DNA from: Fimbriosthenelais zetlandica
Taxonomy: Eukaryota
NCBI GenBank assembly: GCA_977030845.1
Contig: OZ365112.1
Coordinates: forward strand, 17,980,001-18,044,000
DNA length: 64,000 nucleotides
Direction: 5' to 3'
The position numbers and the translations under genes were made by a program. Positions 46,315 to 58,588 of this stretch are shown here, piece after piece (position 1 is the stretch's first letter; every line of letters starts with the position of its first letter). Under the pieces are notes generated by a model. The model was not told where the DNA came from and made no database searches. It saw nothing but the letters and a program-made list of their open reading frames with translations.

Positions 46315-48326
46315 ATGAAGAGTATGGGTGTGTATAGAGCTGTATGGGTTTTGGCGCTATTCCTCTCGCCAGCTTTTCCCTCATATCAGGGGTCACATCA
46401 TTATCGTGGTAAGTGTATATTGGCGGAGTTACATTATTGTTTACATTCATAGAGGAAATGATGTGGAATGGGGAACCGATCTATACAATGTCATTTCCAA
46501 CAGACTAAAAGTTGTACTTACATATAAGATATAATATTATTATAATGATTAAAATATTGCTCGGATATTGATAGAAAATAATAATACCAGTATAACGTTG
46601 ATATAGGCCTACTTTTATTGGTTGTAAATACATGAATCTTTGTTCTTATTTAGACCTTTTCCGACGAGTTATTGGGGGAAAGGTGACCGTGAAGGGAAAG
46701 TGGCCCTACCTTGTTTCCCTCCAAGCTGACATACCCATCAAGAAAATATTGGGAATCACACTCAAATCTAAAGTCTTTTACTGCGGTGGCTCGCTCATCA
46801 ATGAAAGATGGGTTCTTTCGGCTGCACATTGCTTTGTTCACGAAGGACTTGGGTAAGACGATTTTTATTCCCTATGCACCATCATAGTTGGCAGGAAGAG
46901 AGATGTTAGGGGACACAGGCCTGATACAGTGATTATATAGTGATGCTCAATGCGCCCGAGGCCATTTAAAGTGCCTGATATAGTGATAATCAATGTCCCA
47001 GGGTGGTATATAGAGGACACAATCCTGGAGTAGGCCTACATAGAGATACTCAGTCACCCAGGGCATTGGAGGACATAACCAAATACTAAAGCATTATTTA
47101 GAAACAGGTTTCAGGTCTGCTCTATACATGTAATAAAAAAATATAATTTAACAAAATGTATCTCTTTCCAGAAACAAGGGGACAACTCCACAGTACTGGG
47201 ATGCCAGGATGGGTGACATAGATTTAAAGGTAGATTAAATATTCTTACACATTAATGTTATACTCATTTATGTCTATTTCAATTAATAGTGGCACAGTGT
47301 GTCATTCTGGCGGTATGCATGGAGCTGTATTGTGAATTTCATTTATCTATACTTTGCTTCCTTTGGTTCCCTAGTCTAATCTATACGAAGACGTGAAAGA
47401 TTATCTGGGGAAATGGTTTAAAAAGGACAAGTTAAGGGACTGGAAAATCGAGGGGGAGAAGATCATCATTCATCCTGGCTATAATCCAAAAAGTAAGTCG
47501 TAAATAAATAGTCAATTTGTACATTTATGATGAATAAAACCGGGGGGTCCACTATTTATTATGAATGTCATCTTACTGTTTTATATTACAGATAGATGGT
47601 CTAATGACATCGCCCTGTTGAAGATGTCTGAGTCAGTTCCTATAGATCCTAACTACATCAGTAAGATACAAAGCGTTCCGCTGAATGAGCAGGATAACAC
47701 TGACTTCCCTTCTGACAACGCTGAGTGTGCTTTTAAGGGCTGGGGCTGCCGGGCTGGAGGTATAGGACCTATTCCAATTTGACTTTTTTTTCTCCTCCAC
47801 CCTCGTTCCCTGTCTGTCTACATACGTATGTTCTCCGATCCCTTATGCATGCATCCAATCCCAAATGTCCCACAATACTCGCTACCATTTGATTCCTTTT
47901 CTTTTTGTAGGCAAATCTGTATCGTCCAAGGCATTTGAAGTGTTCTTGGAGAAGCTTCCTGACAAGAATTGTACAAGCACATGGCACATTCCTGCTGTTG
48001 GTAGATTGTGTGCTGGAAAAAATCTTGGGGGCAAAGGCATCTGCTCCGTGAGTAGACCTACATTGACATCATATCTCTGTCAGAATTCGTTTCCAATAGG
48101 ATTAGCATCATTTTCCATTGAAATTCACTTGAATCCGAACTATGATTATTTGTGGCTGTTGTAGGGTGACAGTGGTGGACCTCTGGTATGCAAGCGGGGT
48201 GATAAGTGGATTCAAGTTGGCATTGCTTCATTCACTGCTCGTAATGCCCCAGAAAATTATCCTGGTGTCTTCACTCGAGTGAGCCACTACACTGACTGGA
48301 TACATGACACCATTGCCAAGAACTGA
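46315..48326 (+). CDS. Secreted S1A (chymotrypsin-fold) serine protease zymogen, 311 aa, 7 coding exons
   Basis: join(46315..46408,46654..46852,47172..47229,47375..47492,47592..47759,47911..48047,48165..48326). Signal peptide, activation site FRR|VIGG, intact triad (SAAHC, NDIALL, GDSGGP), C-terminal YPGVFTRVSHYTDWI. Confidence 0.95.
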
Positions 48327-49143: not shown

Positions 49144-52100
49144 ATGATCTTCATTGCCAAGTCATCTACCTTCCTTGGTTTATTTTTTATCGTTGGATTT
49201 TTGACAGAAGGTAAGGCATCGATATAGTTGGAATATCTTGTCCATTGGAAGGACGCATATTCTCCTGTATTCGGCCATTTATAATTTTGGAATAATTGAA
49301 GTTTTTTTATTCTTTCTATTTAGAAAATGTTTCTCGGCGTGAATAGTAGGTCTATATTCGAGAAACATCGTGTTAGTAAATGCGAGCGTCATGTTTGATG
49401 AATTCTGACGAGCGTTTCAGTAGTTGTTGCCGACAAAACTCCCGATTCTCAAGTTGAATCGGGTTGTCTGTAGTTGTAATGCGGTCATTAGCTTTTATGA
49501 GGCTTTTATGTTTGATGAGGGCTACTTTTGATGACGCCTGAAGAGCATTATGTTTGATGACGACAGAAGCGCGTTAAGTTTGGTGACATCTGTTGAGCGT
49601 TAATTTTGATGACGAGCGTCAGTTCACATTTTATATGAACACAGCATCATACTCGTTGGATCTTATAACTCTCTATATACTTTTTCTTCTGTCATGGGTC
49701 AAAAATTCAATTTCACTCTACAACTTGATACTGTCAGATATGAAGTACACGCCCATACTTTCAAATCCCTTGGGGTGCGCCAAGGCCCGAAGGAAACTTA
49801 TGGCGATCTCACGATTTGAATCCTTTTTTATTTACTCATGTCCTCTAACTCAAACACACACCATCGCTTCTTGTTTGGACTCTGGGATTGTTCATAAAGG
49901 ATGGGCCACGACCCTCTTCACCCTCGTCCAGGGTGAACTATATGTATGTGTTTTATGTTGATACTAGCCTGTGTAAGAAAGTTGAGTGAGCCCTTGATAT
50001 AAGTGTTAGTATAAACACTAGAACTGTCTCATACATGAACTGAATCTGATACACCTTCATTGAGAATCTTTAATATTAATGCCCTATTTTACGCAATGAA
50101 AATAGGTCTGACCATTATCAAATATAACAGCTTTGTGGATGATTTAAATGTTTTCTGCTCTCTAATGAATGTTCTTTCTCGATAATCAAAATCTTTAAAT
50201 TCTGATAGATGGAGCAGAAAGTATGAGGACTTGTGGGAAGACAATAAGGTTGGGGATTGCCAATAATCGCCAGCCCAGAATCGTCAAGTATCCTGACCGG
50301 GAGTCAGGTGATGGTGAGAGCCCTGTTCCTCCTCTGACCTGTAGATGGGAAATCACTTCACCTCCTGATACCAGTATCCACGCCAGGTTTGATGCTTTTA
50401 GTCTTCCACAAGAGAACGACAATAGGCAATGTGCGAAGGATGTGCTTGAGATTCATGCGGGCACCAAACATGTTGGAAGGTACATGTATATTATCAATAT
50501 TAATCGGTTACCCTTTTTACTTTATCGCTAGTACTACTAGTATCTACTAGTACGTAGTCATATCAAATACATCTTATTGAGCATCTAAAGTAGACCCATA
50601 TCTGTCAGTGTCAATATAAATAGTATGTTATGTGCTTCAGATTCTGTGGGACTAATGTGCCTGGTGGCATAAGAGGAATAAAGATACACGGCGGTACCAT
50701 GATTTTGATGCTGATACTTGAAAGTGAACTGGGAGAAAGCAATGGATTCCTTATCCGTCTTACCATATTGCAATTAGAAACTCCGTCTGAAGATGGAATC
50801 TTGTCGTGTAGAGACGGTAAGTCTTTCAGACTAGCCCCAAGGATAGTAGAGTTACTAAATAGAGTATCCTTGCTAGCCCTAAATCAAGTATTCATGAAAG
50901 AATAGTGTATGTCATTAACCGTGGGTCAAGTATGTTTTCTAGCTCTCTCGTTGCAGGCCCAACAGTGTTTTGTTGTAGAAATGGTGTAACTTTGTCTGCC
51001 GCTGACAGATGTAACCAGAAGGACAATTGTGGGGATGGTTCTGATGAATCTTTGGCTGCTGGATGTTCAGGTTTGAAGAAATCTCTTTTACATCCTGATA
51101 TTAAGACTTAAATACTGAGCTATGTTCTATAGGCCTATAGTTATGACATACTTATGATGAAGTTTTGTCGATGCGTCGTAGGCACCCTACTTTAATTCTT
51201 TTTCTTTTTAGGTTATTTTCAGTGCAGGAACAAAGAGGAAATCTTGAAGACAAAGGAATGTAATCAAATTTGTGATTGTGACGATTGTTCTGATGAGAAG
51301 CAGTGCTGTAAGTATTTTACTTCATCAAATTAGTGCCAAAGCCTATATCCTCCCCACCCCAGTATTAAAGACTGCGGGACAGACGTAGTTCTATGTTTAG
51401 TTGATCGGTTTTCAATTTTATACATTTTCACCTTTATAGCTAGCCACTACATGTGCAATGATGACTCTACAGCTGTCCTCAAATCTCAAGTTTGTGACGG
51501 ACAGAAGAACTGTCCCGATGGTGATGATGAACGCAGAGATGCTGGATGTGAAAGTCAGTTGAGATATCCTTCTTTAATATGTGTTTTGATTGATGTATTT
51601 TGTGTTAGGATTTAGCAACCTTGGATTTATTGTGGACAATTCTAAAACTTGCAGAGGATTTTTGTGATTTTTCGCCATGTCAAAACGATGGGGCATGCTC
51701 CAGTGATGGTCCTTCCTACAAATGCTCATGTACTTCAGGTTGGTCTGGATCCAGATGTACACAGGGTAAGAGATCTGTTCCCATTTTCTTTAATTATAAT
51801 TTCTATTTTTAACTTTTCAATAAATTTCAAACAGAAGTTGTGAAGGGTTAATGGTGTCTTATATTTTTAAGATACCAAAGATGACTGTGCCAGCCAGCCA
51901 TGTCTAAATTCCGCTGAGTGTTGGGATGGTTTTCACCGTTATTACTGTGTTTGTCCGGTTGGTTTCTATGGTTATAATTGTGAAAAAGGTCAGTTTCCTC
52001 TTCCAAACCCCATTTGATACCTTGAAAATATCAGTCGTATCCTTTAGTTAAAGATTTCAAAGCATTATATGAACGACTATAATACTTTTTGTTTATTTAA

Positions 52101-55100
52101 GTGTCTGGAAATTGGCCTTCAAATACCTTGTCTGTGGATGGAGACAATGGAGAAGACAATAACTCCTGTGGGAGCTTGGAGGAGCCATGCAAATCGCTTG
52201 TGTAGCTATTATATTCTCATTATTAAATACTGAAATGAATCATTATTGAGATGTTTCTTTTCATATGGTTGATGACTAATGATTGATTATTGCTTTTCTA
52301 GTTATGGATTGGCCAGGGTAGCTTCCTTCTCGAGGATTCACTTGTTTAATGCCAGCAGGCCTTATACGATAAAGTCGTGGGTCAATCGGAGGATCGCGAT
52401 TTTTGGCAGAGAACAAGATCCTACTTATTTCCCCAAATTGATCTTCGACGATGTCGTTATCACTGAAACTCGACCAAAGTCTGGTTCTGATCTGTGGCTC
52501 AGCAATATCAGATTGTCTGGTAATGCTTATCTTGGTGATGCAAAACTAGTTCTTGATACTGTCAACTTGTCTGGTTTTGCCTTGGATCTTGAAAGCCAAC
52601 GAAGAGTGGATATACACAGAACCTCTCTTGTAATTGACAACTGCAATGTTTCTGAATCAAAATTCATACTAGGAACAAGCCTAGAGGAATTGGATAGTAT
52701 CCCTGCTAATGTTGACATGACAATAAGCAGCTCTTATATCACAGATTCAAGGATTTACACTGCCGGAAAAACAGCTCAAATACTAGTGAGACAAGCTACT
52801 TTCAGTGGAGGTAATGTGAGGTCTGAGGACAAAAAGTCACCCTTTTCAGTATTGGTGGGTTCTCCTAGTAACATGCCAAATGGAGATGAGGGTCATAGAC
52901 CCAAGTCCAAGGCTGAAATGGGAGGGCCAGGACCGAGAAGTCGTGGTAACAGAATTGATGTATTTGACAGCAGTTTTGAAAGTTGTTACAGGGGAAAGGA
53001 CGAGTCAAATGCTGCCATGCGGCTTGGGATATTTGAAGAAGTCAATATTCACATCAGAAATACAAGATTTGAAGGAAACCGTAGAGGTTTGAGGATTCAT
53101 GTGGATGCATCAAAGCGTGGAAGTCTAGACATAACAGAGTCCCAATTCATTGACAACCATGCAATAGGCCCTGGTGGTGGCTTGCTGTTTAGCCAGTCCA
53201 GAGGAGCATTCAGTTTTAGATTAGATAATAATATATTTACTGGAAATTCGGCTGAGGGATTGAAAGGTACGGTTCTGGATGAATCGAGTAAACCTTCCCA
53301 CATAACAGGTAGTGGTGGTGCAATTGCTGTCGATGCCAAACCCTCTTTTAGATTTGGAAGCAGTGCAGAAAGGACAAAACATATTCTTGACATAACCAAC
53401 ACGGTATTTGAAAACAATACTGCCGAAAGTTTCGGTGGTACCATTTACCTCACTTCTGAAGTCAGTGCTAATCTAAGAAATAACTCTTTTTCTAATACAG
53501 CCAGTGTCAGAGGAATGAGGGCAAGAATTGGAGACATTTTGGAGGCAAGAGGGAGGTTGGTCATGTCTGATAACAAATTTGAAGCTCGGTCTTCTGAAGA
53601 CACTAAACCTATAATCTCTTATCGAGCTGACAGAGATGATAGTTTTCTATTGCCCCAGAATTTAACATTATATTGTTCAGCTAATTATGAAACAAGACCT
53701 ATCTATGATTACATCGAATCAAACACCTCAACCAGTGTAGCAGTCCTCCTCTTTTATTGTAAGGCTTGTTCCACGTATCAGTACAGTTTAACAGGTTCAA
53801 CTCTCATCATGTCGAGCAGTCCAGGACAGTTTATGTTAGATACCAGTGCAGAGCACAGTTGTCAAAAATGCCCATACGGAGCTAACTGTGTCTCAAAAAT
53901 AGTTGCGAAACCCAATTACTGGGGTATAAATGTTAATAATCAGGTCTTCATGTATCCTTGTCCTGAGAATTACTGCTGCCAGTCTGATTTCTGTACGACT
54001 TATGATTCTTGTGCTGAAAACCGAGTTGGTGTCTTGTGTGGAGAGTGCAAATCTGGCTACACAGAATCTCTCTTTTCTGCAGAGTGTATTGTTAATAGTG
54101 AATGTGGCATAAGTTCATGGTTCTGGGTGATAATTGTAGTTTATGGACTGTGCTATGTCTTCTTTTTCATTCTGCAGACCGAATTGAGGATATTAATAAT
54201 GAATTTTTCTGATTGGGTGAAAAAGCATTTTGCAAGATGGCAGCAAAGATGTACTTGTAGGACAACTGAAGTCAACAGCATGAAACATGGACCTAAAGAC
54301 TATGTCAGACAACCATCGAACAGATTGGACAAAAATAATGCTTATTTACAGATTATAATGTATTACATTCAAATAACCTCTCTCTTGAGTACAAGCATCA
54401 TTTATGAAGATGGTAGGGACGAACCAGTTGGGGGTCTGAAAAACTTAGTTGAAGGAACATTTAGTCTCTCTGCCCTTGGAATATCTGCGAACACATGTTT
54501 ATTTACTGGAGTAACTGCTGTGTTAAAAACATGGATCAAGTCTGGTTTCCTTCTTTACCTTTATTTTGTCTGGCTGATTTTGTATGCCATGGCCAAATGC
54601 CTTAGTCGGACAAACTATATACCAGATACCATCCATGAAGTCCCTATGGATTCCAGATTTGTAGTGGCCTTTGTGGACCTGATGCTCTATACATACCAGT
54701 ACTTCGCAGAGAACTCCTTCCTGATGTTAAAGTGTATTAAAATTGAATCTCTGGAAACAGAGGTCCTGTATGTATCAGGCAGTGTATTTTGCTATCAACC
54801 GTGGCAATACCTTGTGGTTGCATTTGCATTTGTGTATGTCTTCCCTTATTCAGTTGTGCTCACTGTAGCCCCAAAGCTGCTGAAAATTAGGAAGATCTCT
54901 GTCAAGGTCTTTGTAATTTCTGTCATACTTCCACTATTCTCTGCACCATATTTGCTCTTCATTTACATCAAAGAATGCTACTCTGATAATAGAAGTACTG
55001 ATAGGAGGCAATTGAAGGAGCAGAGGTATCATAAAGATGGAGGTACAGTTGACGCTGTGGTGGAGGTGGTGGCTGAGCCATACAGGAGTGATTTGGCTGG

Positions 55101-55824
55101 TGGGCTTTGCTGGGAAGGCATGATTGCCTTTAGAAGACTTATCCTTGTCCTCATTGCCACCCTAGTGACCAGTAGCCTCTACCGCCATCTTGGATTGATG
55201 TTAAGCAGCTTTATTATTTTAGCATTACATCTTCGTTTTGAGCCTTTCGTCTCCAAATCATGCAACAAATTGGAAACTTTATCCCTGGGAACTCTGCTTC
55301 TCATAAGCATCATGAACCTTTTAAAGGCGTCATACTTTGAGTCAGGAGAGATACCCAAAGGGCCAGCAGATACCATCTTACTCATTTGGGACTGGATTGA
55401 ATTGATGATTTTTGTAGCAGTTCCATGCTTCCTCCTTTTTTGCATAATATGTGCACTTCTGCTCCGTATTGCTGCTTTATGCATAAAAAATTGCAGGAGA
55501 TTCAGAGACAGCAGGAACAACCTTCATACAAATAATTTTGATCCACCAGCGTACAATGAACGTTATTCTGAAGCTGAATGGAGGCCTGATTTGGCCTCAA
55601 GAAATGCTGAACAATCTTTATGGGGAAGTCATGTGACTGAGATGAATGTCAGTGGCCCTCGTTACCGGAGAAGGAGGTCTTTACCCTCTGTGTTTGAGGC
55701 TTTCCCTCCTCAAGGAGACTCTGATTGGCCGAGTTGGTCAGGCAGAAGCAACACATCTTTAATAAGAGATTACAACCAATACTCTGGTGCCTATAACCCT
55801 GGGTTTTACTATAATCCACAGTGA
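49144..55824 (+). CDS. Large receptor-like protein: signal-CUB-3xLDLa-2xEGF-Pmp-like beta-helix-Cys-rich-multipass TM (~9-10)-tail, ~1562 aa, 10 coding exons
   Basis: join(49144..49210,50209..50479,50641..50816,50957..51070,51212..51307,51440..51553,51655..51765,51872..51988,52102..52201,52302..55824). CUB (C.W.I...RF..F.L...C..D.L); LDLa (C.DGSDE, CSDE, CPDGDDE); EGF (CQNDGAC..YKCSCTSGWSGSRC); G.D...CG...PCKS; F..N.A...GG[AG][IL] repeats; CPYGANC..NYWG..CPENYCC; hydrophobic segments. The exon 9 donor (GT|GTAGCT) is weak. AATAAA at ~55957. Confidence 0.88.
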
Positions 55825-56302
55825 TCAATGTATATTGTAGGCTACTTTACTATAAGGCTTGATTACAACCAGAGAAAAATGTATTGGCCTAAGCTAGTTG
55901 GCCTAATAAGGCCTAGGCATCACCTTCATATACCCGCGCCAAATCTAATTAGGCAATAAAATGAATAAAGAAACCAGTTATAAATTCCATCTATTGCATC
56001 TTTTGGTTTATTGTGTTTCTTTCCGAGGATTAAATGTAGCATTAAATGTTCCCGTTGGGCTTTATAATTATAGGGCCTACAATACATCTTTACTTTGTCC
56101 CGTATCAAAACCCCTCTGAACTTGATGGTGATCATGCAGCCAAGTATTTTGCATTTCCGATTCATAGATGATGAGAAAACTCTTCATTTAAAATCAGGAA
56201 ACAAAATAACTACTTCTGATCCGTTATTTTCCTCTATACCACTTGAATATTCATTCACGGGGCCTATTCTACCTTCATCAGAGCCATTTGACAAGGCATC
56301 TA

Positions 56303-56476: not shown

Positions 56477-58588
56477 ATGTTGTCACTCGGGAGAATACTT
56501 TCTAGGATTAAACCTCAATGTTTTCTTGAGGTAGGAGCAAGAAGTCACAGTATTACCGCGGAAATTAGGCCCGAGACCCTGTTCACTGAGCAACACGAGG
56601 CACTCAAAACGTCATTAGAGAAGGTATGGTACGGTACCGTACCCTAAGGCCTAACTAGTAACTTTCTCATTTACGGTATGACATGTCACAGTAGCGTAAC
56701 CTCTGATCCTCATTATCTAATCCATTCATTCATTCATTCATTCATTCATTCATTCATTCAGGGTTGTTTTTGTTAGGTCTACTAGGCCTAGGCCTACCTA
56801 CCCCTATTTTTGTTGAAGGTGGGGAGGGTACCCGTATGATACAAATATTATATATCACTTCAGATTATTGACAAGGATATTAATCCCTATGTGGACCAAT
56901 GGGAGGCAGAAGGACAATTCCCTGCTCGGGAAGTCTTTAAAAAACTAGGAGATGGTGGTTTCCTAGGCGTAACCAAACCCACAGGTAAGCAAAACCAGAG
57001 AACTGTAGAAAAAAACATTTAAAAAAATGAGTTTTTCTTGGCATCAATTTAGTATCATAGCCCTGCACTTTTCCTTGAACTTTTAACCTGTCTAAAATCT
57101 ACATGTAAAAAATATAAATACGATTATTAAAAAAATTGTGAATCTAATAAATGTTTCGTCACTCCGTTATTTCAGAATATGGGGGTCTTGGGTTAGACTA
57201 CACCTATTCAGTTGCTGTAGCAGAGGGACTGGGGAAAATACGTTGTGGTGGTATTCCCATGGCAATTGGTGTTCAAACTGACATGGCTACTCCAGCCCTG
57301 GCCAGGTAAATATTGATTTTCTTTTGTATTTCTAATTTTGACATTTTATAGCCTATCACAAGGTGCCCTCACCTCATCCTGAATCATGGAGAGTATGGAG
57401 TGTGAAACCTGAGTTTGACATGAGGGGACAGCAGCAGTGATGTTTCCTTTAGCCTGAAAAGAAAGTTTTTGTATTTACCTAACTTCTTCCTATTCCAGAT
57501 TTGGCAGTGAGAAAGTAAAGGAGGAGTTTTTAATGCCTTCCATCAGTGGTGACCGTATTGCCTGCCTGGGCGTCAGTGAAGTCGGTGCAGGCTCAGATGT
57601 AGCTAGTAAGAAATTAAATTAAATCCCACCCACCTTTTAAAAATCATTCAAAAACTTTGTGGATTGTTCTGACAAAGCTTTATATATAATCATTCAAAAT
57701 GTAATTTCATTATTAATTTGTAGGCATTAAAACTACGGCTGTGAAGCAGGGAGATGACTACATCATTAATGGTGGTAAAATGTGGACAACAAACGGTTTC
57801 CAGGCTGACTGGATGTGTCTGCTAGCCAACATCAGTAACGATGCTCCACACAGGAACAAGGCACTCTTCTGTCTCCCCATGGATACCCCAGGTGGCCTCA
57901 CTAGTCTTACAATATCACATTTGTAAATAGCAAACTCAGAATATATTTTTTTTCATTGCTTAATTTTGACATTCATTTCCTGGGTGTTTTGCTTATACCT
58001 ATTTTGATCCTTTACTGAAGGTGTCATACTCTCCAAGCGAATTGACAAGTTGGGCATGAGATCTTCCGATACAGCTCAGGTATATTAATTCTGTTGCAAT
58101 TTTTAATCGACATTCAAAGTCAGAAATCGATAGAAATTACATTTGAATTTATCCCCATCTGTCAGGTATTTTTTGAGGATGTGAGGATCCCCCGGAGTTA
58201 TATAATAGGGGAGGAGGGACAAGGCTTCACGTACCAAATGCTTCAGTTCCAGGAAGAACGTATCTACGCTGCAGCTGTCTGTATGTACCCCAGATATTAC
58301 TTTTATCTGATTAATGAAACCAAAGTTGTCTGATGTCAATGAATTAGAATATCTCCCATGATACTAAAGATTTGTACAAAATATATGTATACCAGAAATT
58401 TACCCCCTAAATAATTTTTTTCTCAGGTTTAGAACCTTTGACTGCGTTGATTCAGGAGACACTCGAGTACACGAAGGAGCGTAAGATCTTCAATCAACCC
58501 ATCCTCCACAACCAAACAGTACACTTCCGGCTAGCTGAGCTGGAAACGGAAGTGGAGCTGCTCCGCTCATTAGTGTACCGGACAGTTG
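56477..58588 (+). CDS. Mitochondrial acyl-CoA dehydrogenase (helix-G catalytic Glu, LCAD/IVD-like position); 3' exons not found in window
   Basis: join(56477..56623,56864..56984,57176..57305,57499..57605,57724..57891,58021..58079,58166..58280,58427..58588), ~336 aa. Arg/Ser-rich presequence; [64 protein letters not shown]. The last exon ends in a donor (G|GTGAGT). Confidence 0.9.
56721..56760. repeat. (CATT)n microsatellite in ACAD intron 1
   Basis: About 10 perfect CATT units. Confidence 0.9.

Follow-up and report, generated by a model that had tools for sequence, protein, structure and literature searches.

The receptor gene and its head modules

We describe a gene at 49144–55824 (+) in a 64,000-nucleotide stretch of Fimbriosthenelais zetlandica DNA (contig OZ365112.1, positions 17,980,001 to 18,044,000 of the forward strand), hereafter called the window, in whose numbering all positions are given. 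The exon chain was built from GT donors and AG acceptors that preserve the frame, with 2 ambiguous junctions read directly; this enumeration yields a single chain of 10 exons and 4689 nt, equivalent to 1562 codons with 0 internal stops. The product is probably a 1562-aa cell-surface multipass receptor comprising a signal peptide, a CUB domain, three LDLa repeats, two EGF domains, a beta-helix N-cap, the beta-helix itself, a stalk, about ten helices, and a tail (Table 1). All of the elements that a preliminary description had placed here were found where it had put them.

Position 49144 is the first ATG past an in-frame stop, and a hydrophobic signal peptide begins there. Introns are uniformly GT–AG (9/9); intron 1 spans 998 nt and the remaining eight span 100–161 nt. 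Spliced exon 9, DGDNGEDNNSCGSLEEPCKSL, runs on as ...VYGLARVAS into exon 10, which lies in a large open reading frame (ORF) of 1181 codons at 52279–55824 (+), with its stop codon at 55822–55824. GC content is ~39% in the window, and the coding segments are split, as expected for an animal genome.

The proposed CUB–LDLa3–EGF2 head was confirmed by Pfam matches to CUB, Ldl_recept_a (×3), and EGF (×2). The N-terminal half of the CUB domain and both EGF domains, encoded in separate exons, exceed the Pfam cut-offs; the three LDLa exon fragments score 20.1–23.7 bits, just under the gathering score of 24.1 (E 5e-5 to 7e-4), and their DxSDE calcium cages are intact. The C-terminal half of the CUB domain gave no Pfam match by itself and was assigned by pattern. 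Because every module exon is of phase 1-1, the classic exon-shuffling signature, we infer that the head arose by exon shuffling. Phase 1-1 exons also encode the extracellular modules of other animal membrane proteins with CUB and LDLa domains, such as LRP3/LRP12, Neto1/2, and C. elegans SOL-1 and LEV-10, and in several of these the CUB/LDLa modules act on ion channels. Unlike the window protein, they are single-pass and have neither a beta-helix nor a multipass domain.

Table 1. Exons and associated features of the receptor gene, with the evidence for each assignment
Feature	Position	Strand	Evidence
Exon 1: start codon and signal peptide MIFIAKSSTFLGLFFIVGFLTE	49144..49210	+	Kyte-Doolittle 1.99 (19-residue window); donor aag|GTAAGG, 8/9 consensus match
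Exon 2: CUB, N-terminal half	50209..50479	+	Pfam CUB E 4.3e-6, 27.4 bits vs cut-off 21.4; splice sites phase-compatible
Exon 3: CUB, C-terminal half (FCG...GF motif), and first Cys of LDLa1	50641..50816	+	Sequence pattern and splice phase; weak tblastn match in L004
Exon 4: LDLa repeat 1 CNQKDNCGDGSDE	50957..51070	+	Pfam Ldl_recept_a E 5.5e-5; kept in L004
Exon 5: LDLa repeat 2, extra-Cys variant (CDCDDCSDE)	51212..51307	+	Pfam E 1.4e-4; variant motif also in paralog L004
Exon 6: LDLa repeat 3	51440..51553	+	Pfam E 7.3e-4; kept in L003 (E 8e-9) and L004
Exon 7: EGF 1	51655..51765	+	Pfam EGF E 2.2e-6; kept in L003 and L004
Exon 8: EGF 2	51872..51988	+	Pfam EGF E 3.7e-9; kept in L001, L003, and L004
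Exon 9: beta-helix N-cap DGDNGEDNNSCGSLEEPCKSL, no Met	52102..52201	+	Identity 72% in L001, 48% in L003
Exon 10, part a: Pmp-type right-handed beta-helix ectodomain	52302..53736	+	Pfam Chlam_PMP and Beta_helix; AF2 model; Foldseek
Exon 10, part b: Cys-rich DUF7630-like stalk, 12 invariant Cys	53737..54114	+	Alignment A1; sub-threshold Pfam DUF7630; weak furin-repeat/laminin-EGF-like fold matches
Exon 10, part c: multipass membrane domain, ten predicted helices, SadA/Flc/Pkd2-like fold	54115..55461	+	AF2; Foldseek; Atlas; language model; invariant Q/E/R/N/P in helices
Exon 10, part d: variable tail, probably cytoplasmic, and stop codon	55462..55824	+	Motifs RRRRSLP, DWPSWS, RDYN, GFYYNPQ, PPAY; comparison with P0001
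Two AATAAA polyadenylation-like signals	55955..55969	+	Pattern scan; ~130 nt past the stop

Head and body as probably one gene

That the head and the body belong to one gene is highly probable from the genomic sequence, and the competing account, in which a secreted CUB–LDLa–EGF protein at 49144–51988 is followed by a separate beta-helix multipass gene from ~52100, is improbable. Two genes would have to be reconciled with the start of the body, where neither the cap exon nor the large exon has a usable start codon with a signal peptide. Exon 9 cannot be a first coding exon because it contains no Met, and the first ATG of the large ORF lies inside the acceptor region; the product would be a beta-helix and 12-Cys stalk that lacks a signal peptide. 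The introns that join head to body measure 100–113 nt, no longer than the introns inside the head, and they agree in phase.

The same order of modules recurs upstream of related bodies. A relative on a 7-kb contig (L001; body identity 58%) has EGF2 and the cap upstream of its body, and the ortholog locus in a second genome (L003; identity 53%) has LDLa, EGF, EGF, and the cap in that order. A paralog locus (L004; body identity 36%) carries the CUB C-terminal half, three LDLa repeats, and two EGF domains ahead of the body, again in the same order, which argues against two independent genes. Because a paralog with only 36% body identity keeps this head order, the fusion of head and body would be older than the paralog split. 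An LDLa2 variant with an extra Cys inside the calcium cage (CxCDDCSDE) is common to the window (51212–51307) and to L004 (3273–3458).

L003 and L004 lie on the same 1.89-Mb contig, ~26 kb apart and on opposite strands, and form a cluster of head-bearing paralogs in the related genome. A third family member (P0162) shares that contig; no paralog of the receptor gene occurs within the 64-kb window. At L003, a long tandem array of near-identical units, with Cys-rich pseudo-ORFs in several frames, occupies positions 84–2155 upstream of the LDLa3 exon. This array, probably an intronic satellite, conceals or shifts the CUB and first LDLa exons of the ortholog.

Weighing against a single gene, the splicing of head to body is read from genomic sequence, and no database protein spans head and body, and no match carries the extra ~390 residues. 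The two-gene account also draws on cnidarian family members that have no such head, and on read-through of the exon-8 donor (51989–52017), which encodes GQFPLPNPI and meets a stop after 9 codons. Because of that early stop, a secreted head-only isoform (CUB–LDLa3–EGF2) is possible in principle as a product of the single gene.

On the upstream side, a trypsin-like serine protease gene (46632–48300, +) ends ~0.8 kb before the receptor start codon, with its catalytic motifs in separate exons (AAHC at 46821, DIALL at 47606, and GDSGGP at 48165); it appears to be a separate gene. Downstream, at 58094–58333 (+), lies an exon-like ORF with acyl-CoA dehydrogenase-type sequence, identified by eye.

Beta-helix, stalk, and membrane domain

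The Pmp-like beta-helix anticipated in the preliminary description was borne out, as a right-handed one, by sequence and model alike. In the large ORF, Pfam detects Chlam_PMP (26.7 bits vs a cut-off of 20.6) and Beta_helix (26.5 vs 25.9), together with a weak NosD match. An AlphaFold2 (AF2) model that draws on 11 homologs and covers the initial 483 residues encoded by exon 10 is an all-beta stack of coils with a predicted local distance difference test score (pLDDT) of 78.5 and a predicted template-modeling score (pTM) of 0.83. The Pmp signature is modest in the window protein—4 FxxN, 3 GGA[ILV]-like, and 2 strict combined units, the last vs 0.01 expected from shuffles—and much stronger in cnidarian relatives (73–86 bits). 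The G.D...CG...PC motif noted earlier is present as well, in the separate exon 52102–52201; the corresponding G.D..C...PC cap stands directly after the signal peptide in Montipora P0012 (GNDTWPCNQKNPCKTIGRAV), P0013, and P0015.

Foldseek matches the beta-helix model to solved structures of PL6 alginate lyases, chondroitinase B, glycosidases, the pneumococcal adhesin PfbA, phage tailspikes, pertactin, and Ag43, with E 5e-4 to 4e-2, template-modeling (TM) scores ≤0.39, and identities of 8–13%; at this level the matches would fix the fold class only. The prominence of PL6 alginate lyases, chondroitinase B, and glycosidases at the top of this list (E 5e-4 to 1e-2) could be taken to mean that the protein is an enzyme, its beta-helix acting as a polysaccharide lyase or hydrolase tethered to the membrane. 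We consider this very improbable: beyond the low TM scores and identities, the adhesins PfbA, pertactin, and Ag43 score equally, Pfam finds no lyase or hydrolase family, and the invariant positions of the beta-helix alignment (A2) are mostly FxxN/GGA coil residues, which are structural and lend no support to a catalytic site. An enzyme identity was rejected as unsupported on these grounds.

In Chlamydia Pmp proteins (PF02415), FxxN/GGA[ILV] coils likewise build a right-handed beta-helix (PMC11166332). Pmps, however, are bacterial autotransporters with a C-terminal beta-barrel, whereas the window protein continues into a Cys-rich stalk and an alpha-helical membrane domain, and few canonical repeats are left in it. 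No autotransporter Pfam match was obtained in the window protein, whose C-terminal half is alpha-helical and multipass. Recent bacterial transfer of the Pmp part was rejected in view of the separately spliced cap exon, the flank-like GC content, and the wide eukaryotic spread.

For the stalk and membrane domain, we aligned the window protein with 14 homologs over 593 residues (alignment A1); residue numbers in the membrane part refer to A1 and its model. The alignment contains 12 invariant Cys in the stalk and three more in membrane-domain loops. Against Pfam PF24633 (DUF7630), the stalk scores 16.5–17.6 bits vs a cut-off of 27 (E 0.004–0.0095); DUF7630 was matched in 5/15 relatives (best E 8.9e-4), and structural neighbors carry that name.

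Within the family, conservation across animals and protists is strongest in the membrane domain. Positions that are invariant or nearly so within its helices are Q212, Q357, W459, E460, R467, P503, F504, N510, E513, and N527, the polar ones being Q212, Q357, E460, R467, N510, E513, and N527. Several of these belong to the PY...WE....RR and RFEPF....N.LE motifs, first noticed in the window protein and here found family-wide (W459, E460, R467, P503, F504, N510, and E513). AF2 on A1 returned a small beta-rich stalk followed by ten helices (pLDDT 75.7, pTM 0.71), in keeping with the ~9–10 hydrophobic segments first counted past the Cys-rich block.

Topology was read from loop composition. The loop past helix 1 is K/R-rich and disordered and is probably inside; the loops with invariant Cys are probably outside. 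Loop charges read from the C-terminus inward, an RR pair at the start of helix 7, and a basic low-complexity tail favor a cytoplasmic tail. An outside N-terminus and a cytoplasmic tail fit the loop charges only if one of the ten helices does not cross the membrane; nine spans would then be left, the number predicted for SadA and Pkd2 (PMC2173991, PMC9727806), and the Pro-kinked helix at 389–416 and the weakly hydrophobic helix at 304–329 may be the candidates. Tail motifs RRxS, DWPSWS, and RDYN are common to the window protein and P0001, the closest relative found.

Fold comparisons of the membrane domain with SadA and PF06011 proteins set one predicted model against another. Among reviewed UniProt (Swiss-Prot) models, Foldseek ranked Dictyostelium DDB_G0281931 best (E 5e-10, TM 0.51, model residues 39–591), with further matches to the Dictyostelium proteins SadA (E 6.8e-4, residues 30–575) and DDB_G0287209, and then to S. 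cerevisiae YOR365C and Flc1/2/3 and S. pombe Pkd2 (E 1.9e-3 to 1.6e-2), the range reaching 5e-2 once Cryptococcus Flc1 is included; no reviewed animal protein rose above noise. In AlphaFold database (AFDB) clusters, many matches (E 1e-9 to 1e-26) show the same body beneath varied heads, under names that include right-handed beta-helix, ABC-type substrate-binding domain, Ephrin_rec_like, laminin EGF, Sushi, IPT/TIG, DUF7630, and "TRP C-terminal domain," the last at E 7e-12 and 1e-9 with TM 0.54–0.58. An ESM Atlas fold search gave TM 0.59–0.65 to clusters from sponges (Chlam_PMP), cnidarians (DUF7630, and leucine-rich repeat [LRR] with DUF7630), and green algae (Ephrin_rec_like with PF06011); the cluster carrying PF06011 scored TM 0.59. 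Among language-model neighbors of the membrane part taken alone, the nearest named proteins carry PF06011 (score 0.95, ~219/256 features in common).

The resemblance to TRP/FLC-like PF06011 proteins, which had been proposed from motifs, therefore held by fold (Foldseek, AFDB, Atlas) and by language model and failed by hidden Markov model (HMM), where nothing was matched at E ≤ 1. Because that HMM fails, any kinship to PF06011 is remote; the predicted models point to the same fold and to probable remote homology, with the window protein's domain outside the Pfam family as now modeled. In the fungal members (Flc1/2/3, YOR365C, Pkd2, Cryptococcus Flc1), the helices superpose from ~residue 199 with a Foldseek probability of 1.00 and the N-terminal ectodomain is outside, as is predicted for the window protein, whereas the heads differ and the window protein has an extra N-terminal helix and a probably cytoplasmic loop. 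SadA (Q8I7T3), DDB_G0281931, and DDB_G0287209 share the predicted fold of both the Cys-rich stalk and the multipass domain, and their plan likewise combines a conserved multipass body with an extracellular head that varies (EGF-like or LRR). They differ in identity (11–15%) and in span number, with nine transmembrane helices predicted for SadA vs ten modeled here, and SadA has no beta-helix, CUB, or LDLa.

Better-known membrane architectures were tried and set aside. The preliminary description had held that the protein is not a rhodopsin, adhesion, or frizzled G-protein-coupled receptor (GPCR), and seven-transmembrane GPCRs (classes A, B/adhesion, C, and F) were indeed rejected: mGlu4/CaSR matched at E 0.18–0.5 and TM 0.08–0.13, no GPCR exceeded the VIA-align background, and there was no 7tm Pfam match. 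A canonical six-transmembrane TRP channel was rejected on similar grounds (TRPM5 at E 0.52 and TM 0.08; no sequence match to any PDB chain), and ABC and OSCA readings were dropped after negative Foldseek PDB and VIA-align results.

A widespread family and a proposed mechanism

The A1 profile retrieves 7103 clusters (50% identity) at E ≤ 1e-3 and 1335 at E ≤ 1e-30 among 1.84 billion representatives, and the body family has members among cnidarians, sponges, and protists. Those with names are "uncharacterized" proteins of Actinia, Montipora, Porites, Exaiptasia, and Stylophora; the literature yielded no paper on animal members, on DUF7630/PF24633, or on eukaryotic Pmp-like multipass proteins. 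Members of the family (for example, Actinia tenebrosa LOC116300849, Montipora foliosa XP_068670808, and Exaiptasia LOC110253693) share the cap, the Pmp coils, the 12-Cys stalk, and every membrane helix together with the WE..RR and PF..N..E motifs, with matches at E 1e-42 to 1e-58 against the single sequence and down to 1e-180 against the profile. In the annotated cnidarian members, however, the signal peptide leads directly into the cap, and Pfam finds no CUB, LDLa, or EGF.

Because annotated cnidarian members lack these modules, the head is best read as a lineage-specific addition, which would have been gained by exon shuffling in this animal's lineage before the paralogs diverged. The term "chimeric" in the preliminary description thus suits the CUB/LDLa/EGF head, an add-on, and not the body, in which beta-helix, stalk, and multipass domain make up an old and widespread animal and protist family. 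The window gene is a new domain-architecture variant of that widespread uncharacterized family, not a categorically new system.

Two further observations concern the breadth of the family. One Stylophora pistillata protein (P0016; PFX28788.1, 3995 aa), annotated "Uncharacterized protein YfaL," has six stretches that match the membrane-domain profile; the gene model has probably merged several family members that lie in tandem. Three AFDB clusters (A0A1Y2H4B2, A0A0L0SB27, and A0A1Y2CBL9) place the stalk and multipass body under an "ABC-type glycine betaine substrate-binding" head, an arrangement that points to versions of the family that sense small molecules.

The explanation we favor, with moderate confidence, is that a ligand- or adhesion-sensing ectodomain is coupled to a possibly Ca2+-permeable membrane module. 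The long ectodomain would bind or tether a partner—a glycan, matrix, a microbial surface, or another protein—and the rigid disulfide stalk on the extracellular loops would relay engagement or tension to the membrane domain. That domain would then open a polar, probably Ca2+-permeable path, as in the stretch-activated Pkd2 of S. pombe. Additionally or instead of cation entry, the tail could provide cortical coupling, as proposed for SadA, and with its RRxS, DWPSWS, and RDYN motifs it may be a regulated element. That the membrane domain actually permeates ions is the more doubtful part of this explanation, and we advance it tentatively. The polysaccharide-sensing or channel role put forward in the preliminary description is likewise putative.

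Pkd2 of S. pombe, whose N-terminal domain is extracellular and whose tail is cytoplasmic, was reconstituted in vesicles and found to be Ca2+-permeable upon membrane stretch (PMC9727806). Fungal PF06011 members are the only ones known to be Ca2+-permeable or to take part in calcium homeostasis (PMC9727806, PMC9600462). SadA, with extracellular EGF-like repeats and nine predicted transmembrane helices, is a surface protein needed for substrate adhesion, phagocytosis, and normal actin organization (PMC2173991).

These relatives also define the chief alternative, a non-conducting adhesion or scaffold receptor of SadA type, in which the multipass domain would serve as an anchor, sorting determinant, or partner platform and signaling would run through the cytoplasmic tail. 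Among reviewed models, SadA ranks with the best fold matches, and it is defined genetically as a substrate-adhesion receptor, with channel activity not demonstrated (PMC2173991); the CUB, LDLa, and EGF modules and Pmp-type helices are of kinds classically used for binding or adhesion, and the short tail motifs RRxS and DWPSWS are conserved. Against this stand the conservation of the membrane domain, which is the highest in the family and includes invariant polar and charged residues within helices, beyond what an anchor needs, and the Ca2+ permeability of the reconstituted fungal relative (PMC9727806). We regard a purely non-conducting receptor as unlikely.

Several results count against the coupled receptor-channel explanation. 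Ten spans starting from an outside N-terminus would leave the tail outside, at odds with the positive-inside charges of the later loops and with the character of the tail itself. TM scores to the fungal PF06011 members are low (0.25–0.34), though the Foldseek probability is 1.00, and the PF06011 HMM is without a match at E ≤ 1 in the window protein and in each of 15 family members. A profile search with the membrane part only (A3) gave 11 matches, all within the family and none annotated PF06011, its reach being limited by a length window and a word filter. No solved structure represents the membrane fold: the A1 profile had 0 matches in the PDB at E ≤ 10, Foldseek with the membrane model found nothing there at E < 0.001, and VIA-align over 48,161 chains returned background only (best Z 7.6, on a 60-residue stretch). 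No pore is known for this fold because no member has a solved structure. Flc proteins are also termed flavin carriers, and the role of SadA may be adhesion or trafficking without ion flux.

At its broadest, the proposal is that this gene and its relatives, which number in the thousands across cnidarians, sponges, some bilaterians, and protists, form an undescribed receptor-channel class, in which a modular ectodomain directly gates a Ca2+-permeable SadA/Flc/Pkd2-type pore on ligand or mechanical tethering; in that general form we think it rather unlikely. If true, it would be a class that was overlooked because it has no counterpart among the reviewed proteins of standard model animals. Apart from that broad proposal, the membrane domain brings together three subjects commonly handled apart: an adhesion receptor of Dictyostelium, the Flc/Pkd2 proteins of fungal calcium homeostasis, and a very large orphan family of early-branching and spiralian-type animals. 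This gene shows that an ancient multipass body was retained in animals and lengthened there by exon-shuffled binding modules of animal type. The recognizable CUB/LDLa/EGF head offers a tractable entry point to the questions of sensing and ion conduction in this family.

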